Assembly: GCF_041956535.1 (NCBI RefSeq)
Contig: NW_027192193.1
Location: 983,192-1,047,191, forward strand
Length of the DNA stretch: 64,000 nt
Direction: 5' to 3'
Source: Calcarisporiella thermophila CBS 279.70
Lineage: Eukaryota; Fungi; Calcarisporiellomycota
This document shows positions 5,821-57,275 of the stretch, piece by piece. How positions within the stretch are numbered: the first letter of the stretch is position 1; every line of letters begins with the position of its first letter. The position numbers were made by a program, and so were the translations under genes. Under the pieces are notes generated by a model. The model saw nothing but the letters and a program-made list of their open reading frames with translations, made no database searches and was not told the DNA's origin.

Positions 5821-6808
5821 ATATAAGATGCTATTGTATGAAAATAAATCTCCTATTATGTATTCCAGAGGTTGAGGTTTTGTACATATCACTTTATTTT
5901 CTCCTATTGGTGATCAGCACTCGCATTTGAAACTCCAGCCCCAAGTTTCCGCATCGCTAGTGGTATTTAATGTGCGGAAAAAGGGTTTTAGCAGGTCAAC
6001 ATGGCAAATATTACCGGAGAGCCTGTGACATAAACGGAGATATATTTAGATACGACTTCTTAATTTGAAGGTTAGGAAGTCGGCACATCTAAGCGACATC
6101 ATCTCGGAGTACGTCTACTCGATTCATTGGAGCAGTTGGCAGATTATCTTGATTAAAATCATACAATTCCTTGTGAGCCCGCTAAGAGAAAAGAATAAAG
6201 AGCCGCACGAAATAGGAGGGATTCAATTGGTAGGCATCTTGGATCACTTGTGACTGCACTTGTGTCCTCAAGGCATGCACCCCCTTTTTCCGCTTGTAGT
6301 ACTCCTTCCCACAAGCTCTTTATTTTCGCCTTTCCTTGTGAGGTGAAGTGAAAATTTTTTGTATCGGACTGCCAAATGCATCGTCCTGACATCAGGACAC
6401 TTACAGCTAAGGTTCGCTCAATACTCGATTTCTTTTTTTCTATTTACCTGAAATCCATCTTACAAGTCGCTTATAAATTTGAGCCCTTAGGTTCACGGCT
6501 GATAGTGGGATTGCAAATTATTCATCAAGATTAGTTGAAAAGATATCGATTTTTGATTTCGGACCCTTAGTTATAAGTGTCTTCAATATCACCCTAGTTT
6601 GTGTCACTTTCTACCATAAGGCGAAATAATTGGTGTAGACTGCAAACACTTCTTTACTTTTTTCCCGAATTCGGAGCCCAAAATCGCACCAAATCAATCC
6701 TTAAACTTCTGGGATATAAAATAGTTACCACAGGTTTCCCGGCACGGTTCTTTCTCCTTTTGTTTACTATTTTATTTCTTTTTCTTTTGTTTATTTTCAT
6801 TCTAAAGC

Positions 6809-44202: not shown

Positions 44203-45929
44203 TCATGTTCTTGACCATGATCTAGTGATCTCTTCCAGAGTCTTATTCTTGGTCTCCGGGACAATTCGATAGATTGCCCACGTTGAAATTGCCAACACGG
44301 CGGCAAACAACATGAATACGCCGCCTCCCAACCAAGTTTTCAGCATAAGGAACAAGTAGGTGACTGTGAAATTTGCTGACCAGTTTACTACCAAGCCCAG
44401 AGAAGAGGCCGCAGCGGCAGCCCGAGTTTCTACAATCTCAGAGGCAAGTAAGAAAGGAATCGGCCCAAGTCCCACTGCAAAAGTGGCCACAAAAGCCACG
44501 CTGGAAACGGCCGAGAGAAATCCGAAGTGATATGACATCGAAAATGAAAGAAGCAAAGATGCAATCATCATAGTACTACTTGATAGAAGAAGGAGTGTTC
44601 GGCGACCAGCTCTGTCCATCAGGTAGGCCGAGACTACTGTCATCGCTGTATTTACAATACTGATAAAGACGGTGATGAGATCAGAAGAGGTTGGCATAAC
44701 CTCAGATAGAATTGGTGTTGAATAAAAGATAACCTAAACCAACACCATTAGAGGAACGCAGGAAAGTCAATTCAATTGAAGTAACAATGATCAAGTCTAC
44801 AAGAAAGATACCCCGTTGATGCCTGAGAACTGTTGAGTTAAGTGAACCAGCAGAATTATCATTAATGGACGCCGATACTCGATGGTGAAGAGCTGGAAAG
44901 GGGTGATGTGCTTTACAGCAGGGATAGCAGGAATGGCATGCTCTGGAGGATTCTCCTCAGGCGCCTCATCCCTCTGCTCAGCAGATGAAATAAGCCCCTG
45001 TGTGTCCTCCGCCTTAACTTTAAGCCAACTTGATAGTTCGTCCTCGACATTAAGATGGCCCCGGAGTTTCTGAAGAGATCTTTTTGCCTCACTATATCCA
45101 CCCGGACGCGTTGCAAGATAACGAGGTGATTCCACACACATAGGTAATAAAGCGAGTTGAACAATGGAGATAGCTGCGCCGATCTAATGAGTATTCAAGA
45201 AATCCATACAAGAATCGATTAGAATCACTTTCAAAGCAAGGGGAGACCTCTCCACTCTAACTATAGAGATACCAGAAGAATAACGCGCCACAAGGAAAAT
45301 GTTGAAAACCACATTCCCAACAATTGGGATGCAAGGATACCTGTAACAATTCCTAATTGGTTGATCACACCAAAAATTCCGCGCAAACTAACTGGTGCAA
45401 TTTCAACCAGGTATATTGGAACAACCACAATTGCCACTCCGCATCCTACACCTGTAAGGAATCTGCCAACCATCATCCAACTCGGTGTTGTTGCAAATCC
45501 CATAACTAGTGACCCAATTGTGTAGGCTGCATTATTCAGAATAAGCGTCCAGCGACGTCCATATCGGTTCGCCAGAGAGGAAGCCGTCAAGGAGCCCACG
45601 AGGCCACCCAGAGTCAAAAGGGCAACAAGGAATGACCAAGTAGATTCGGACTTGGAAAATTGGGAAAATAAAGGAATCAGCATGTGCTTCAAAATGAATA
45701 CGCTTATGCTCACCATTTGTAGGCATGGAGGCAAATAGGAGTCGTCGCCAAAAGGGTAGTTTGATAAAAAGCCCTCAGAAGCATCGTTAGCAATGGTGTC
45801 TTTAGATTTGCAAGATGCAATCACATCCTTAGGAATGTTAAGCACCCCAGTATGATAACCAAATTGAAATGAGGCTAGTGCAACAATCGCTGCCACGAAG
45901 AGTCCATAAGGATTCAAGTCATTATGCAT
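44203..45929 (-). CDS. MFS sugar porter (GLUT/YBR241C-like)
   Basis: FQFGYHTGVLN, RYGRR, YLVEIAP..RG, VESPRYL, QQFSGIN, GLGPIPF, VPETKNK. Confidence 0.92.
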
Positions 45930-46420: not shown

Positions 46421-47140
46421 CTAAAATAATTCGTTAATATGTACCTGGTTCCGTCCAAGACTTTTAGCAGCATAGAGTGCTTTGTCCGCCATTTTCAGTA
46501 GGACTTCAGGGTTTAGTTCGAGCATGTTTAACTCGCTAATACCAATTGAAACGGAAAGTGGGAAACTGTTTATCTTAAGCGATCGAACTTCCGCAAGAAG
46601 CCGATATGCTATTGCCGCCGCTTGGCGTGCCGTTGTATCCGGGGCAATGACTACAAATTCATCACCACCAAGGCGAGCTACCACAAATTCAAGACAGAGC
46701 GTAGTCCGCAAACATCTAGCCACGGCTTTCAATGCGCTATCACCGCAGCCATGTCCGTAAACGTCATTGATGAATTTCAAGTGATCAATGTCAATAAAAA
46801 GTAGGGTCAAAGGAGAGTTGACATGGTAAGATTTCAGAGTTTCCATGTACAGTCTTTTATCAAAATAGCGACGATTGGGCAAGCCGGTCAAAGAATCTGT
46901 GTAGCAAAGAAAAAGCAAATCATGCTCACGACGTACATAATGATACCCCAACAAGATGAGAATGGATAAAGTAGAGAGAAAAGTGTAGAGGTATGTCTGA
47001 TACTCAATTGACAGCTCATAGTGAATGGAAGATCCGGTATAGTCAGGATAGCAACGCAGCGCGAGTAAACCTACCGCAGCAAGGAGTGCAAGCAGAAGGG
47101 CACCAAAGTATGTCATGAACTGAGGTCGATGGCCACTCAT
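46421..47140 (-). CDS. Membrane-anchored diguanylate cyclase (2 TM + GGDEF domain), bacterial type, intronless
   Basis: TDSLTGLPNRR, FIDIDHLKFINDVYGHGCGD, ARLGGDEF, SVSIG, ADKALYAAKSLGRN; two N-terminal hydrophobic helices. Confidence 0.95.
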   Translation of the reverse strand: MSGHRPQFMTYFGALLLALLAAVGLLALRCYPDYTGSSIHYELSIEYQTYLYTFLSTLSILILLGYHYVRREHDLLFLCYTDSLTGLPNRRYFDKRLYMETLKSYHVNSPLTLLFIDIDHLKFINDVYGHGCGDSALKAVARCLRTTLCLEFVVARLGGDEFVVIAPDTTARQAAAIAYRLLAEVRSLKINSFPLSVSIGISELNMLELNPEVLLKMADKALYAAKSLGRNQVHINELF

Positions 47141-47276
47141 TTCGGTCCCATGTATTATTATAGAATTTTCATTTTAAATTAAGCAATAATTATCGGTAGA
47201 AACTTAAGATGGAGAAACATCCAAGATTCTAATTACCTTACCCCAAATGCGAAAAATATAGCCGAGTCTTAAAATG

Positions 47277-47284
47277 CAGTCACA
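47277..47284 (-). promoter_or_regulatory. HomolD-like box (CAGTCACA / TGTGACTG) upstream of the GGDEF gene
   Basis: Same 8-mer in the same orientation upstream of three other minus-strand genes (24279, 58729, 62582). Confidence 0.5.
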
Positions 47285-49088
47285 ACATCGTCAAACGCCC
47301 CTTTTACCCCGGCAACTCTCAGCAACTCTCTATTAAAAAGTGCGAGAAAGTAATTGTAAAAAAACTGCAGAGTCCACTCTATTTAAAATTATATGCATGC
47401 TATGTTAATGTTTATTAACAAAGCCAGTGCGCTGAGTTGAAATTATTAAAGTGTATAGCTGGATTTAACTATTCTTTAAACATTATCTTCAATTTTTTCA
47501 ATTCTTTATTTCTCTTTTTTTATTCAATACCTCCCATTCTAATTTGACTTACCGTATAAAAAGAGCTTTCTCTTTACCATCATTATAAATAATGGATCCC
47601 AACATTAAATTACTTCCTAACAAGATCTGCGCCAGTATTGTCCGGCTGAGATAAAGATGAGACCTCGCGACAGGTCGTTGCCACTCTGAACAGCAAAATA
47701 CACTATATTATTTATTATTCTACTTTATCACAAGTAGTCTAATACTTTAGTTAACAATCACCAATTTCCTTTCTTAAAGCAAGATTGACATTGAATTGGT
47801 TGAGGGATTGAGTTATCTGCTGCTTTCAATCTGCATACTTTGGTAATTTAATTTTTGAACATGTTGCTATGTTTAATTTTTCCATATCAAGAAAGCATCC
47901 AAGCAACAAATAAATTAAGCTCCGCTTTGACCATTTTACGTATCAAATCTAAGAATACACAGGGATAATTGAATAATCTTTCCGTGCAACGCTATAGCAT
48001 AAAATATACTTCTTTATTTCAATAATCAACCCAATCCAAGGGAATAGTGACCACTCTACGCATCATTGTAGTAAATCTGCAATAGTTTTAGATTCTTCGG
48101 ATCCTGCAGTGTATCTGCGAGCATACATACAATAACGTTTATGTGACTAAGATGTATTGGTCGGCAGAAGACTGCAATCTCGAAAATATCTCTCAATTAT
48201 AATAATTGTGTGAAGGCCAGCGCTGCAAAAGAGACTAGGAGGTTGGCACTTTTGCAAATAGGCGAAGTACATCCAGATTAGCTCCAATAAATTTTCTAGC
48301 TGAAAAGGTTGTATCTCATTCGTTACTAACTTAGTATAGCATATTACTAGTTATTGATGCTAGAAAATAACTCTGGCATTGACTTGTGTTGATAATATTG
48401 GGTTGAGTCGAATTGATACAGGAGAGCTCTAGTGCCTGTATCAAGGAAATACTTTCGGTAAAAATGAAGACGATATCACAGTGAGCAATAGTATTCGTAG
48501 AGATATTAATCCTTTCCATGACTGTGATAACTTATAACTTCATCCGTTAATTGATAGATCTGAGGAATGCAAGGTAAAAGTGCAAAATTTCATGGTATAT
48601 TAGAAAGAGTAAAAGTCTGAACTAACTATCCAATTTTTTTGGGATGGAAAGTGCGAATCTCTCTTTAAATCCAAATACTCTCGAACATTTCATGAGCATA
48701 TTAGCAATAGTTGCAACGGTCGTAGTATGAATGATGCCGAGAGGTTCTAGAGTGTCATTTGCTTAATTAACCAAAGATTAATTTACGCATTGAATGAGTT
48801 ATAGTGCACAATTCAAAGAACGGAATTTCCCACAAACCTCATTAGCATTCGATAGTATGGGAGTCAACGGTCTCCAGGGCATATCCCTTTCATGGCAATT
48901 TCCAAAGTGAACGAAAACATTCATCTTCGGCCGAGATTACTAACGGAGTTAAATAATATTAATGACTTAGAAATATCCCCCGAAGCCAACTTTCCTTTTT
49001 GAAATATTACGCCCTAGTTCATATTCTGATATATTGAGCATATAATGAGCACAGAGTAATTCCTTTTTGATACTAAAGCCATACCAAT

Positions 49089-50646
49089 ATGGCAGATAAG
49101 AAAATCAGCACTCATATTTTTATTTTTGTCAATCCCAAGTCCGGGTCACAAAAGGGGAAGGAATTAACCAATCTTGACAATGAATTTCCACTTCCTAATC
49201 GTCCGGAAATTAGTGTCCATGTGTGCAATGTCCTCGACGAAGAAGACAAGAATCGTGGATTAGCGCAATTGAAACAATTACATGATGAGGGCTGGGGTCA
49301 AAATAGGAGTCTCCAGGCGTGGTCTGCAGGGGGAGATGGGACTGTCATGGCGATAGTGCATGATTGTTTAACCAGGGGAATAGATTTAAACCGAATAACA
49401 TTTTCTTGTAAGGTGTACTCTTATCTTTAAGGGCGAGAGAAGTTATTTTATTTATTTCTTTTTGATTATTCAGGCATTCCTCTGGGAACCGGTAATGATT
49501 TTGCTCAAGGTAAACCATACGGCACATATTTAATTTTTGCGATTGACACTAACAGTTCTTTATCACCCTGAACTATTATACTGATAGTGATGGTAAGTGC
49601 ACAAATAGCTGCGATGATATGGCCATTTATCTCCTCAACTGTGGGGCTGATAATGCGCTGCGCTTTCAATAGGGATGGGGCAAAACGATGCATGGTAGAA
49701 TTGTGGGTCGGAACCTCAAAAAGTTACGCGAAATTGTAGAGAAACGAGTGGATGGAGAGGCGGCGCATCTTGATATATGGGAGATGGAAATGAGAACCTA
49801 TGACACTGGATTTGTACGCAAGTCGGGAAAGTCATATCGGGATGACCGCCAGGAGACGCTCACTCGAAAATTCAGCAACTATATATCAATCGGCGTGCAG
49901 GGATATGTTGGCTCTGAATTTGAGAAAAATCGCTCGAGTAAACGTGCCCTCAATGGATGCGTATACTTCTTCGAATCGATCAAATGGATTTTTTTCCGGC
50001 GGTTTCCAAACCTTGCTCCTCTAATGTATTATTTTGAGCAAAAAGAAAAACCCGTCCTTTATTGCTGCCGGGATGATGGGGAAGAGATTCCTGAGAAGTT
50101 CAACGATGTACCGCGTCTTATTAACAACCCAATCGAACTCGTCATCCAGAATATTCCCCATATATGGTGAAAATTCAACCAATGGCTCTATTTACGGCGG
50201 TTTTACTAACTATTCCATTTCACAGGGGGCGGGAAATTGCACTCTGGGATGAAGCAGTTAAGGGGGAAGAATGCGTGCAAAATCGATCGGGTGCATGTGA
50301 CCCAAGCAAATGGACTAAGCAACTTGCAAACGATGGGCTAATCGAAGTGTTTCTAATCCGTAGCGTAGGCTCCTATTTGAAGAAGCTTTTTGGCGAGCGC
50401 CAACATCTTTCGCGCATCGGTCAGTTTGATGAGCTGACGATCCAGTTCCGCAAACCAGAGGAAACCTTGGCAGGCGGAAACAAACATAAGATAGATCAGC
50501 TCTGTATAATGGTGGATGGGGAATTTTATACAGTTCAGCATCCTAAGAGCCTGAGTATAAAGCGTTTGACGCAAATTCTCTTACTCGGGTCAAGCCCTAA
50601 GAGGTCTCGGCTAGTACGGGATGAGAAAGTCACGAAGGGGAGCTGA
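49089..50646 (+). CDS. ATP-dependent diacylglycerol kinase (catalytic + accessory domains, no C1)
   Basis: FVNPKSG, AGGDGTV, IPLGTGNDF, GWG, LDIW, FSNYISIG, DGLIEV, VDGE. Confidence 0.88.
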
Positions 50647-51286: not shown

Positions 51287-54200
51287 ATGCTGCAGACAGA
51301 GCATCTTTCATCATCTGTTCGGATACGGGAAGACAATTCTTCAGTTTATTCATGTTCTCTACAGCGAACTTTCACAGAAACCAAGGATGAAGAGTGGGAG
51401 AATATTTCTACAATGCTGAAAAGTTGGAATACGAATACTGAACCTTCACATAATCTCAGCACAGCATCTAGCATGGACCCTCCCACATCGACATATATAC
51501 CCGAACGCACAAAAGAAAAACCGATAGCAGCTTCATACCCACTATCTCAACCTCAAATACCGTCTGAACCCGTCTCACAATCTAACGCTACCAACCTTTC
51601 TTATTCCTCTGAAATGAAAACGAATCAAGCTCCCAAAATACTCGAGAAAAAACGGTTTGTACCAAACCGTGGTCAACAGGCAGAACCGAAGCCTCGTGAG
51701 AGTGTTTCGCGCGTCTCTTTAGCTAGATCGTTTATGTCACGGCTCTTTTCACGAGATAATGACACTCGACCACACACACCAACACAAGCCCCCAAACCCA
51801 CAGTGCACACGGTGACTACGTGCTCCAATGCCGGGAGGGAGTCCTCGTCAACTTTAGCAAATGCCGAGGACGATTCAGCCGATGACAACAGCACAATAAA
51901 AGGGCAAGAGATTGCACAACAACCTTCACCACCCTCTCAGCCATCCTTAATTAACGAACCATCAGAATCGGTTGCGACTCCACCCATGCTTCAAGAGCCG
52001 TTGTTATCTGAAGAAAATGCGGCCCTTGACTCTGATATGAATCATGAAGCACCACAGGTGCCAGAAATGGCGCTCCCTTCGCGAACCGAACTTTGTGCCG
52101 CAAATGTGACCATTCAAGTTAGTGATGCTGACAATAGCGTGCTGGTACATGAAGACAATGAAGGTGTTCAACCTCAGCAAGAGATAAATGCACGTGTTGT
52201 AGAGCACACCATCTCTCCTACTGCCACTTCTTTCTCAGAGCAAACACGGAGTTCCTACACTACTTCATCCCCGCCCTCCCCCTTATCACCTAGAATACCT
52301 CAAATGTCGCAAATTCCAGATAATAATACCAAAATCCATTGTATGATGAATACAAATAGCTCAGAGCTGGGGAGAATCCCTAGGGGTAAAATTCAACGAT
52401 GGGCAGACTTTCTCCACTAAAAAAATAGTAATCCCCTATTTATTCTTAATAGGCACTACCCATTTACTCGCTTCTAATAATCGCATACCGGGGAAACAAC
52501 TTAGTCCTGTCTTCTCGGCTCTCTTTGAAACTCTGATGGTCCTGGATCTATCTTTCAATCAGATTTTTATATTGCCAAAGGAGGTTGGGCTTCTCATAAA
52601 CCTCAAAGAACTATATCTTCAAGGCAACATGCTGCACGATTTGCCCGACACCTTAGCGAAATGTCTTGAGCTCGAAGTGCTCGACTTGCAGGGAAATATA
52701 TTCGAGGAACTTCGTAAGCTCCATATATGGCCAGGATTTTGATTGAATAATGATTGTAACAATTCATTTTTTCTTGTTTAATCCAGCTGCGAGCACCCAA
52801 AAGCTAATTCAGCTGCGACACCTTGACATTCGCAACAATCGAATACGGCATATTCCACCATTTCTCTGTTGCCTCTCAGGCACGCTCACCAGCTTCTTGT
52901 ACGAGGGCAATCCACTAGAGTCCTGGTATCACGAACTCGCATCGCCACCCCCTATTACCGCAAGCTCAAATACAAACATCTCCCAGGAGGATAATGCTAG
53001 AACCAAATCGCTGCGAAAGTTAAACTCTGCCCCCTCGCTCTGGCGACGACAAAGCCAGGCATCAAACATGAGTATGAAAGATGATTACGAGAACAATCAA
53101 CGCACCTCAATGCCAGTGATTGGTTTTACTGAGGCTCAGGTCACGGTTCCAGACCAACCCAGTTTAGATTCCTCACGAGCGTCTATGTGGTCCACTTACC
53201 CCAGACGGCTTCACAGCCCACCGCCAAAGGCCTATCGTAACTCAATGTACAGCAATGCTGATGATCAGTCTGTCTATAACCTTCAGGATCGTCGCAGTTC
53301 GCGAGTCACTCTAGATCAGGGAAGCCACCTGCAACGGGACAAGGTTAGATCCCCTTCTCCGGTAGTATCCCTTCTTAAAGGCGTAAAAGACGCCATGAAT
53401 TTACGCAGATCTAGCGTCATCTCGACCTCCTCAGTGCAACCGCTTGGTTCTCCCGAGTTATCTCCTCCCCATATGATTTCTCCCGAGCAGATAGACCACC
53501 GAGGATCTCCATCACGCCCTACCTCCTTCTTTTCCAAGAGCAATTTCCGACTAAGCCTGATATCGTCCGTTAGCCAACCGACGGCAGATATGGGACGTTA
53601 TGTTCCGGAGCATCCCCAACGAGCTAGTGCCGGTGGGAGACTCATGCGGAAATCGTCGCGGGTAGAGCGTGCGCTCGATGTACCTCCACCCAATTTCGGG
53701 CAAACAATGCGCGACTCAGGCTTTGCACGAAGTTGGAGTGTCGCGGGGGATACCTCACTAGAGCCATTAGAGGATGAAAAGGTTTTGCTGGATGCGAACA
53801 ATCTGGATGCCGTCATCGACGAAAGGAAGGATTGGTTGACGCCATCTCTGGCCATGGATTCTCTCCAGACGCATCGCCAGGTTCGCGCGATGGACTCAAA
53901 TCCAGAGAGTAGGTGCACTTCTGCCTTAACCATTCGCACGACAGCATCTTTGGAATGCGAAGACCCAGCCAATTTGATGTCTCTTCCTTCATCACGGTCA
54001 AGCTCATTATCCTCATCGCCTTCACATTCTACTTTGAACACGCCTACTCGAGGCTTTGATCACAAAATGTCGCCAACCAATTTGCCTCCTGACGCACACC
54101 CTGGGGATAGTGCTCTGAGTCGGCTCCTTGGTGGACTTCGAGATCTCTACGACTTAGACTCAGAGACGAGTGAGTATGAGCAGGTGATGGCGTGGCGGAG

Positions 54201-55425
54201 GGTCTACAATACAGCAGAGAGCGAACGTAGGCTTATCTATGGAAACGAGGCGGGAGAGCGGGGTGAAAATATCGAGCCCTTGCGAACACCCACTCCAAAA
54301 CATGTGCGTCGGCGCCGTTTTATTCTCCGCGAAATACTTACCACGGAAAGATCGTATGTGCAGGGATTGCAAGAGTTTATGGACATCTACGTGGAGCCTA
54401 GTGCTCAGGTGCTCTCGCCGCAGGAGAGAAAACAAGTGTTTTCCAATTTCGAGAGTATCCTCGCTTTTCACCGAGACCATTTCTTACCGGCTCTGGAGGA
54501 GGAGGTGTCGCGACTAACCAATGACAAGGAGGTGAACGATATGGACGACGGCATACAAGATGATCCAGTAAGAGTTGGAGGCGTGTTTGTAAAGCTGGCC
54601 GATTTTCTACGCATGTATAGTTTCTACATTAATAACTGTGATTCCGCATTGGGGATGCTGGAGGGATGGCGCCGGAGTCGAAAGCCGGTGAAGCAGCTGA
54701 TGGAGGCCGCAAGAACCCATTCCCGACACGCGCAGATCAATTTTCAAGGCTATTTGCTATTGCCGGTTCAGCGGATTCCGCGCTATCGCCTCCTTCTGAA
54801 AGATCTTTTACGCAACACGTACGAAAGCCACGGCGATTACGCAGATCTGCGTCGCGCCTCAGAGGCCATGGAGGCACGCGCCGAAGAGGTCAATGCTCGT
54901 AAGCGTGAGCACGAAAACCATGAGCGAATTGTTCAAATTCAGGCGATGCTGCGCTCTCGATCTCGTACGGTGCTTGTACAGCATGACCGCCGCCTGATAC
55001 GAGAGGGTTTCCTGCGGATTTCACACGTCGCGAGACGGGTTCCCTACACCGAGTCGCCCATCGCCGGGGCGCAGCGGCTCAGTGTTACTTATGTCAGGCG
55101 AGAATTTTACTTTTTCCTGTTCAACGACATCTTTGTGTGGTGTAAGGCGAGCAGTGGACACTACCAACTGTTGCGACAACGATCCGCCGGGGGTGCAAAC
55201 GCGTCCATCCTTCCTCTAGTGCCGACGCTCGCGCAAGGTCAAATGCAATTGCAGATGACGTTGAAACTGGACTCGCGACTCGAACCCGCCTCCGTTGTAC
55301 AAGTATTCGAGGAGAAAATGCTTCGCGTGGTCGACTCTACCGGAATCTACTATCTGGCCTCCGTCCTCTCGAATGGGGACGCTGACCTCGATATCTGGGC
55401 AAAAGCTATCAATACCCGATGGTGA
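51287..55425 (+). CDS. LRR + DH/PH Rho guanine nucleotide exchange factor
   Basis: Ser/Pro-rich N-terminus; LRRs (LDLSFNQI..LP, LYLQGN.L..LP, LDIRNNRI); DH motifs EILTTERSYV, LLPVQRIPRYRLLL; PH motif FFLFND. Confidence 0.85.
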
Positions 55426-55826
55426 TTCATTGTATCAGACACATTTTTACACCCCCATTTTCAACGCAATAATATCATGCTTTTTTTTTTTTTTACGTCG
55501 CTATCCATTTTTATTCCTCGTTTCAGCCTTATTTCTATTCTATTAATCCATCGCTGCAATTTCTTGTTATTATTGTTTTGATTGTTTTGCTAGTTCATTC
55601 CCCATTTTTTATCCTCCACTCCAATATATTTGTGCTTCTCTCTAACGTATATACATAAATGCGTGCGTGTTTGTGTGCACTTTCCAAGGGGAAAATGAGA
55701 GGAACTCTATTTCTCCAATGTCGAATAAAGTTTTAAGCTCCCACTTGAGTGACTGCGAATTGGACAACAATAATTCAACAGAAAAACAATTAGTGTGAAA
55801 GCATATTTGCTGACACAATTCTCGCC

Positions 55827-57275
55827 ATGCTGACACGGTCGTTCGCCTCCATCCGTTCTCTACCTATCGGCCGGTATACCAGCTTGTCAAAGCGCTTAAA
55901 ATTACTTGGTCCCACCCGCTTCTCGTCATCGTCCTCCGTTTCCACACCCCTTCCCCAAGCCCCCCTCACCAATGCAAAACCGAAGCCCGCCACAAGCGCA
56001 GGCGACTTGGCCAATCGCGACCACCGTGCCATTGCAAAAGCTCAGCAGCTCTTCATGATTCATCCCAGTAGTCCTGGCTCTGTCTTTATGCTGCCACATG
56101 GGACACGCATAGTCCAACGGCTACAAGACTTTATACGGGGAGAGTACCATCGATTTGGGTACGAAGAGGTGATGACTCCGCTCATATACAAGAAGGATTT
56201 GTGGGAGACATCAGGACACTGGCAGAATTACAAAGAGAACATGTTTCTTGTCCATGGTGGCGATGGCCATGAGAATGACCTTGACAAGGATGGATTCGGG
56301 CTGAAGCCGATGAACTGTCCCGGCCATTGTCTCATTTTTGATAATGTGCCACGGTCTTACCGCGATTTGCCTCTGAGGTATGCTGATTTTAGTCCACTGC
56401 ATCGCAACGAGGCAACCGGGGCCCTTACCGGGCTAACGCGTGTGCGCCGCTTCCATCAAGACGATGCCCATATTTTCTGTACCGAATCACAAATTCAGCA
56501 AGAAGTTCGCGACTGTCTTACCCTGATCGACCGTATCTATTCCATATTCCGGTTCCCGCGCTACGAACTCACCCTGTCCACCCGGCCCGACGCTTATATG
56601 GGTGAGCTACGTGAATGGGACCATGCAGAGGCTGCCCTGCGCTCTGCCCTTGACTCCACCGGCAAGCCCTGGTCAATCAAGGAAGGAGACGGGGCCTTTT
56701 ATGGGCCCAAGATTGATGTGATGGTGGGCGATGCTCTAGGGCGGACTCACCAGACTGCCACCGTGCAGCTAGACTTCCAACTTCCAGCCCGATTTGGGCT
56801 CCGCTACCAGGATGAGCAGGACAAGCTTCGCACACCCATCATTATCCACCGTGCGGTGCTGGGCTCAGTGGAGCGTATGCTCGCCATCCTCATCGAGCAC
56901 ACCGAAGGAAAATGGCCATTTTGGCTAAGTCCGCGCCAAGCGGTCGTGATACCCGTCGGCCCCTCCTTTGAGGAATACGCACGCAAGGTTGCCAAGGCCC
57001 TCTCGCTCGGCCAGCGATCGCTCGACTTTAGGCCTGAAGAGGCGAATACGAGTCAACGCTACTACGTGAATGTCGATGCCTCGGCTCGACACAGTCTTGG
57101 GAAGATGATCCGCGAGGCACAGCTGCTGCGCTACAACTTTATTATGGTAGTCGGGCAAAAAGAGCAGGAGGCGGGGTTGGTAAATCTGCGCACGCGGGAC
57201 GGCAAGCAGCTAGGGACCAAGTCTTTGGAAGAAATCCTGGACGTTTGGGCTCAACTTGAATCCAACTACGAATGA
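55827..57275 (+). CDS. MST1: Mitochondrial threonyl-tRNA synthetase (intronless, no N-terminal editing domain)
   Basis: Presequence; DHR, LWETSGHW, KPMNCPGHC, RVRRFHQDDAH, GAFYGPKID, IHRAVLGS, anticodon-binding domain. Confidence 0.93.
   Translation: MLTRSFASIRSLPIGRYTSLSKRLKLLGPTRFSSSSSVSTPLPQAPLTNAKPKPATSAGDLANRDHRAIAKAQQLFMIHPSSPGSVFMLPHGTRIVQRLQDFIRGEYHRFGYEEVMTPLIYKKDLWETSGHWQNYKENMFLVHGGDGHENDLDKDGFGLKPMNCPGHCLIFDNVPRSYRDLPLRYADFSPLHRNEATGALTGLTRVRRFHQDDAHIFCTESQIQQEVRDCLTLIDRIYSIFRFPRYELTLSTRPDAYMGELREWDHAEAALRSALDSTGKPWSIKEGDGAFYGPKIDVMVGDALGRTHQTATVQLDFQLPARFGLRYQDEQDKLRTPIIIHRAVLGSVERMLAILIEHTEGKWPFWLSPRQAVVIPVGPSFEEYARKVAKALSLGQRSLDFRPEEANTSQRYYVNVDASARHSLGKMIREAQLLRYNFIMVVGQKEQEAGLVNLRTRDGKQLGTKSLEEILDVWAQLESNYE

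Follow-up and report, generated by a model that had tools for sequence, protein, structure and literature searches.

A bacterial-type GGDEF diguanylate cyclase is very probably encoded in the chromosome of the heat-loving soil fungus Calcarisporiella thermophila CBS 279.70. The window (the whole stretch of DNA analysed, 64,000 nucleotides) contains a single intronless gene for such an enzyme among host genes. As a transferred gene that was kept by selection it is well supported by its sequence; as a signalling system it is a candidate only. On balance, and by a narrow preference, we read it as a domesticated, feedback-free cyclase of myxobacterial type with a promoter box taken over from a transposon end and a c-di-GMP signal acting through new receptors or export, which would be the second independent entry of such an enzyme into eukaryotes and the first into fungi.

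Protein architecture, catalytic site and feedback site

The gene and the parts of its product are as follows.

46421-47140, minus strand: diguanylate cyclase gene with two transmembrane helices and a GGDEF domain (2TM-GGDEF), intronless, 239 aa (ORF, Pfam, NCBIfam, AlphaFold)
47057-47119, minus strand: membrane helix 1, residues about 8-28 (hydropathy, AlphaFold, family HMM)
46934-46993, minus strand: membrane helix 2, residues about 50-69 (hydropathy, AlphaFold; one helix on to residue 80)
46445-46903, minus strand: GGDEF domain, residues 80-232 (Pfam, alignment to kin)
46655-46669, minus strand: A-site GGDEF, residues 158-162 (motif, alignment)
46685-46696, minus strand: lost primary I-site, CLEF, residues 149-152 (RxxD/E in the family: 96/96 bacterial kin have R at the first position and D or E at the last)
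46823-46825, minus strand: H106 in place of the secondary I-site arginine (R in 96/96 bacterial kin)

The open reading frame begins with ATG and runs through 239 unbroken codons without intron, stop or frameshift, and a profile search found the gene in single copy in the 28.16-Mb, 116-contig assembly. Residues 80-232 matched the Pfam GGDEF domain (PF00990) with an E value of 6.4e-41 and 140 bits against a curated cut-off of 23.8; the NCBIfam model TIGR00254 was also matched, and no named equivalog cut-off was reached. The motifs TDSLTGLPNRR, FIDID, INDVYGHGCGD, RLGGDEF and ADKALYAAK..GRN are all present. In the AlphaFold monomer model (pLDDT 94.4), helices at residues 7-33 and 36-80 precede the GGDEF fold, the second of them unbroken and leading straight into the domain. 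Their Kyte-Doolittle (KD) hydropathies are 2.29 and 1.49, with family medians of 1.86 and 1.69. Foldseek matched the model to WspR, DgcR, PleD and other known structures (for WspR, E 2e-16 and TM by target up to 0.93). The intact frame, the two transmembrane helices and the GGDEF motifs listed in the initial annotation are therefore borne out by the ORF, Pfam and AlphaFold. Its description of the protein as a sensor cyclase is not supported, since the I-site is lost, Pfam detected the GGDEF domain alone, with no ligand-binding or receiver domain, and the helices are joined by a loop of 21 residues, near the family median of 22.

By domain score, fold and A-site, the protein is a member of the GGDEF diguanylate cyclases, with catalysis predicted. 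The catalytic-domain residues D117, D119, K122, N125, D126, H130, D134, R156, K226 and R230 are kept, the A-site RxGG(D/E)EF is complete, and the metal (D117, D119, D160/E161) and substrate (K122, N125, D134) residues are present. When a column of the GGDEF domain was counted as conserved if 90% or more of 96 bacterial kin agreed in it, 39 of 44 such columns were found unchanged, among them those of all metal, substrate and A-site residues. In contrast, neutral drift of a bacterial gene simulated to a GC3 of 0.50 preserved 28% of these columns on average and at most 64%, introduced 9.7 stops and left an open frame in 0 of 2000 cases, under the assumption of a high-GC donor, which divergence in an unsampled low-GC intermediate would not fit. 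These results support the view that the catalytic site stayed under selection after transfer and, as far as constraint is concerned, sustain the earlier description of the gene as still functional. We consider it likely from the sequence that the protein is catalytically active.

The five changed columns are R103K, L177I, R106H, R149C and D152F. Three of these five changes fall on the four I-site positions (p 0.003, post hoc): C149, F152 and H106 are replacements, and R180 alone is kept. H106 occupies the column of the arginine in the SLREQ motif of WspR, which we take to be R198. None of the 96 bacterial kin has lost two I-site residues. With both the RxxD motif five residues before GGDEF and the secondary arginine gone, the protein falls outside the I-site-regulated (RxxD) class. 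As the catalytic residues are kept and the I-site is replaced, catalysis appears to be constrained and feedback not. Loss of the I-site arginine in Myxococcus xanthus DmxB raises c-di-GMP about 4-fold (PMC4877007). For the fungal protein, the I-site loss is equally compatible with relaxed constraint and with selection for higher output.

Two small features adjoin the start codon. A 4-codon upstream ORF (47137-47151, minus strand) ends in a TGA that overlaps the GGDEF start (ATGA overlap); it could dampen translation or be a chance occurrence. The GGGA about 9 nt 5' of the ATG is a possible Shine-Dalgarno relic.

Bacterial relatives and donor

Among the matches listed from searches of 5.8 billion clusters and 1.84 billion representatives, no protein exceeded about 49% identity to the GGDEF protein, and none of the listed matches carried a eukaryotic label. 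The lists comprise the best matches, so that unrelated GGDEF proteins may yet occur in other fungi. The best full-length relatives, at 40-47% identity with the membrane part included, form an uncharacterised bacterial 2TM-GGDEF family. A family HMM from which the fungal query was left out gave the N-terminal 79 residues 44.9 bits, while the best of 1000 shuffles reached 10.0. As this region is family-specific, the whole gene, anchor included, derives from the bacterial family. In maximum-likelihood trees, the fungal protein was sister to six bacterial proteins (98/97 in a careful run, 97 in another), with an odd composition and a branch of 1.44 compared to about 0.5-1.0 for the tips of the sister clade. 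This nesting supports horizontal transfer from bacteria into the C. thermophila lineage, so that homologue search and phylogeny both agree with the horizontal origin first proposed.

The fungal protein resembles members of the family (P0411, P0141, P0162, P0412, P0006 and P0470) in architecture, loop length and membrane-region sequence. However, the bacterial members have an I-site in 96/96 cases, are GC-rich, are preceded by Shine-Dalgarno-like leaders and have longer N- and C-terminal tails. About 100 members of the family were seen, nearly all metagenomic, with no sensor domain and an invariant I-site, and the family appears to be undescribed so far. In the closest bacterial clade, the GGDEF gene adjoins an ABC-F gene, a PGPGW gene, DUF4398-OmpA and a MutS-like gene.

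Five of the six sister proteins were located on GC-rich bacterial contigs with common neighbours. A shared neighbour gene occurs in Myxococcota clusters, the query's top feature match in the Atlas is mostly Myxococcota, and one family member bears the NCBI name Myxococcota bacterium. The donor was probably a soil myxobacterial (Myxococcota) lineage, judging from these pointers. A phylum-wide isolate search, in a genome set that looks non-myxobacterial, returned no family member, and the donor is therefore not nameable from isolates. A GTDB scan with the single GGDEF protein gave generic GGDEFs among the matches listed, and a metagenome scan with the N-terminal half gave no relative. Likewise, viral contigs contained only generic GGDEF matches (30-41% identity), with no hint of a viral carrier. 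No orthologue was found in other fungi or metagenomes, in searches that included no close sequenced kin of the lineage.

Chromosomal setting and the upstream transposon remnant

The gene is flanked by the following features.

44203-45929, minus strand: sugar porter gene, host, with introns, downstream neighbour (Pfam; GT..AG introns)
47257-47646, plus strand: decayed left end of a host Tc1/mariner element (terminal inverted repeat [TIR], leader, ~15 transposase codons), facing away from the GGDEF gene
47277-47284, plus strand: CAGTCACA, HomolD-like box within the remnant of the TIR, 137 nt upstream of the start codon of the GGDEF gene (motif; candidate core promoter)
49089-50646, plus strand: DAG kinase gene, host, with introns, divergent neighbour (Pfam; GT..AG introns)

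The sugar porter ATG at 45929 (minus strand) lies 491 nt beyond the GGDEF stop, and the DAG kinase gene starts at 49089 (plus strand), 1.95 kb upstream of the GGDEF gene. Both neighbours were searched exon by exon, and Pfam matches together with visible GT..AG introns agree with the initial annotation of an intronless gene between two intron-containing ones. Its statement that bacterial genes and operon context are absent also stands, as a search of the flanks recovered no convincing remnant of the genes that neighbour the bacterial kin; what must be added is the host Tc1/mariner remnant directly upstream. The remainder of the gene-free gap (47650-49088) is unique, AT-rich, without a match elsewhere in the genome and without a long frame. 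A 17-nt AT-rich inverted repeat flanking the ORF (46309 and 47159) was treated as chance, and a scan for sigma-70 promoters and terminators gave chance-level results only.

The host identity of the region is reflected in a threonyl-tRNA synthetase (ThrRS) gene 9 kb away, whose best matches (63-67%) are from Mucorales and which in a tree is sister to Endogonales, Mucorales and Umbelopsis, the position reported for C. thermophila (PMC10079182). Synteny with Umbelopsis around this gene is not conserved, and thus no empty site is demonstrable. The RhoGEF and mitochondrial-type ThrRS genes (51287-57272) have GC3 values of 0.54 and 0.61, above the rest of the window.

Contamination was found to be about 20 times commoner than transfer in early-diverging fungal proteomes (PMC11291939), and the CBS 279.70 assembly was built from short reads (454, SOAPdenovo; PMC11393059). 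A fragment of a contaminating or endohyphal bacterium might have been joined into the contig, and the lack of introns would fit such an origin. However, the assembly would then have to contain two wrong junctions less than 1.3 kb apart, in unique sequence free of Ns on a fungal contig of 1.38 Mb, and the window as a whole contains no Ns. Host-specific DNA, in the form of the Tc1 remnant, begins about 115 nt from the GGDEF start codon (the other flank has no repeat), and the flanks hold no bacterial neighbour remnants. The GC3 of the gene is 0.418, within the host range (0.34-0.61) and below that of the bacterial kin (0.66-0.81); a GC-independent codon test did not separate host and bacterial genes, so this agreement is a GC-level effect only. 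The FYMINK/GARP ratio of the protein is 1.13 compared to at most 0.53 in the 96 kin, among which a member without an I-site was never seen. Searches of the 28.16-Mb assembly recovered no other GGDEF gene and no EAL, HD-GYP-type, PilZ, MshEN or true DnaA gene; a DnaA match on contig 22 proved to be partial (Bac_DnaA/ATPase_2) and to lie in a P-loop ATPase gene of eukaryotic appearance. Given the lack of other bacterial c-di-GMP and DnaA genes, the host-level GC3, the N-free sequence and the adjacent host transposon end, a chimera is highly improbable, and we are correspondingly confident, from sequence evidence, in a true chromosomal transfer.

A DNA search of the flanks matched 47266-47646, at 70% identity, with the left terminus of a Tc1/mariner element from contig 6; this element has TA-flanked TIRs and HTH_Tnp_Tc3_2/DDE_3 pieces and belongs to a family with 57 matches genome-wide. 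No right end or second TIR was found nearby or beyond the GGDEF gene. As the gene lies outside the left TIR and no second TIR follows it, we rejected the idea that it was cargo of a Pack-type transposon. The contig 6 element itself (153832-155482) has TA-flanked terminal repeats of about 140 nt, which hold the HomolD-like box, and a broken transposase, and it is inserted within a reverse-transcriptase-bearing retroelement.

HomolD is a core promoter element of fission yeast (PMC10253590). The box CAGTCACA occurs 6 times in the window against 1.2 expected and 1064 times genome-wide against 431 for a reversed control, and three other minus-strand ATG frames have it in the same orientation 55-106 nt upstream. 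This suggests that the element is also used in C. thermophila, a Mucoromycota fungus. Since the box lies inside the TIR and intact TIR copies also contain it, it arrived with the transposon and was not built for the GGDEF gene. The chance that an 8-mer survives at 70% identity is about 0.06, and the box is possibly a borrowed core promoter of the GGDEF gene. Further boxes in the window lie at 6249, 8118, 24279, 58729 and 62582.

Possible functions and comparison with known systems

Exon-by-exon profile searches, in which positive controls were recovered, returned no match to EAL, HD-GYP-type (HD_5), PilZ or MshEN in the genome, although searches of this kind may overlook receptors and phosphodiesterases that are non-canonical or split by introns; STING searches recovered no positive control. 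Of the partners for which the initial annotation had proposed a search, EAL, HD-GYP and PilZ proteins were not found, and the finding amounts to a single gene in a single species rather than a complete signalling system.

As the best overall explanation, although one that we hold tentatively, we propose an old, selected transfer that yielded a membrane-anchored, feedback-free c-di-GMP synthase with a bulk or released product. An ancestor of C. thermophila would long ago have taken one gene from a soil bacterium of the 2TM-GGDEF clade, and this gene would have become part of the chromosome and remained under selection for catalysis. The helical hairpin would anchor the protein in the plasma membrane or the endoplasmic reticulum, its GGDEF domain facing the cytosol, and helix 2 with its extension would pair two copies, joining 2 GTP into c-di-GMP. 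Without a feedback site and an EAL or HD-GYP enzyme, synthesis would be constitutive, its output set mainly by transcription, possibly driven from the HomolD-like box of the Tc1 remnant. The c-di-GMP would be a bulk product that leaves the cell, much as the Dictyostelium signal is secreted, and serves as a cue for bacteria, grazers or the fungus's own hyphae. Indeed, unbraked and slowly turned-over synthesis fits a released bulk product better than a fast intracellular switch. We favour this reading over an internal messenger, a silent or fading gene, another product or a chimera, but no c-di-GMP exporter is known, which counts against it. The released use, proposed by analogy, is a shade more doubtful than the explanation as a whole.

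An internal second messenger, acting on a non-canonical receptor (e.g., in cAMP/PKA signalling, sporulation or wall synthesis) and turned over by general phosphodiesterases, would draw on the same intact, selected A-site and a catalytic domain predicted to be cytosolic, and Dictyostelium uses its transferred DgcA in development (PMC5055082, PMC5804921). However, the genome yielded no canonical receptor or degrading enzyme, the protein has no input domain and has lost feedback, and restriction to a single species would be unusual for a core developmental signal. We regard this role as unlikely. Slightly less likely still is a real transfer that was once useful and is now silent, barely expressed or catalytically weak, its open frame heading to decay. 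The long branch (1.44 versus about 0.5-1.0 for the sister tips), changes at the conserved juxtamembrane sites (G69V, D73H, R103K), the upstream ORF overlapping the start and the lack of detected partners are consistent with decay, while 239 codons free of stops and frameshifts, the retention of every catalytic residue, two helices that are still hydrophobic and a fold confidence of 94 argue against it.

Hybrid (Hypr) GGDEFs that make cGAMP have serine at the position of the guanine-selecting aspartate. We take D134 to be that aspartate in the fungal protein, which accordingly lacks the Hypr signature, and with N125, K122 and both metal aspartates likewise canonical, a different product (linear pppGpG, cGAMP) or a role as a mere GTP binder or sink is improbable despite the divergent sequence, lost I-site and new cellular setting.

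The favoured feedback-free synthase shares with WspR, PleD and GcbC the GGDEF fold, A-site, metal and substrate residues and a helix leading into the DxLT motif. Unlike these proteins, it is encoded in a fungal chromosome, has no input domain and has the arginine and aspartate of the I-site as well as the secondary arginine replaced. Dictyostelium DgcA is not known to be membrane-anchored. Like the fungal gene, it is a GGDEF cyclase that a eukaryote took over from bacteria (PMC5804921), and c-di-GMP is a secreted signal in Dictyostelium (PMC5055082). However, DgcA has proven activity and is conserved throughout the dictyostelids, while the fungal gene, a candidate enzyme, was found in one species. 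From the nesting of the fungal gene in the bacterial 2TM clade, in trees built without DgcA, we infer an independent transfer. The fungal gene resembles other transfers from bacteria to early-diverging fungi (PMC11291939) in being one short bacterial gene, free of introns, on a fungal contig. In the accessible text of that survey of 44 such fungi, GGDEF proteins or diguanylate cyclases are not mentioned and Calcarisporiella is not named.

GGDEF cyclases and one eukaryotic transfer, Dictyostelium dgcA, are already established, and a 2016 paper described Dictyostelium as the sole eukaryote in which c-di-GMP had been identified (PMC4877007). No report of a fungal GGDEF protein or of fungal c-di-GMP was found in the literature searched, which is thin on subscription journals; this matches the earlier remark that no characterised fungal system is known. 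If active, the enzyme would be the first diguanylate cyclase reported in a fungus among the literature searched. Generally c-di-GMP is regarded as a messenger of bacteria; an active copy would add a second eukaryotic kingdom, and a culturable fungus with such an enzyme would be a simple system in which to look for eukaryotic receptors or exporters of c-di-GMP. The clear-cut loss of a feedback site that is kept in all 96 bacterial kin shows how a signalling enzyme cut from its network is rewired. A cyclase that is small, comes from a thermophile and has no feedback could also be of use for c-di-GMP production.
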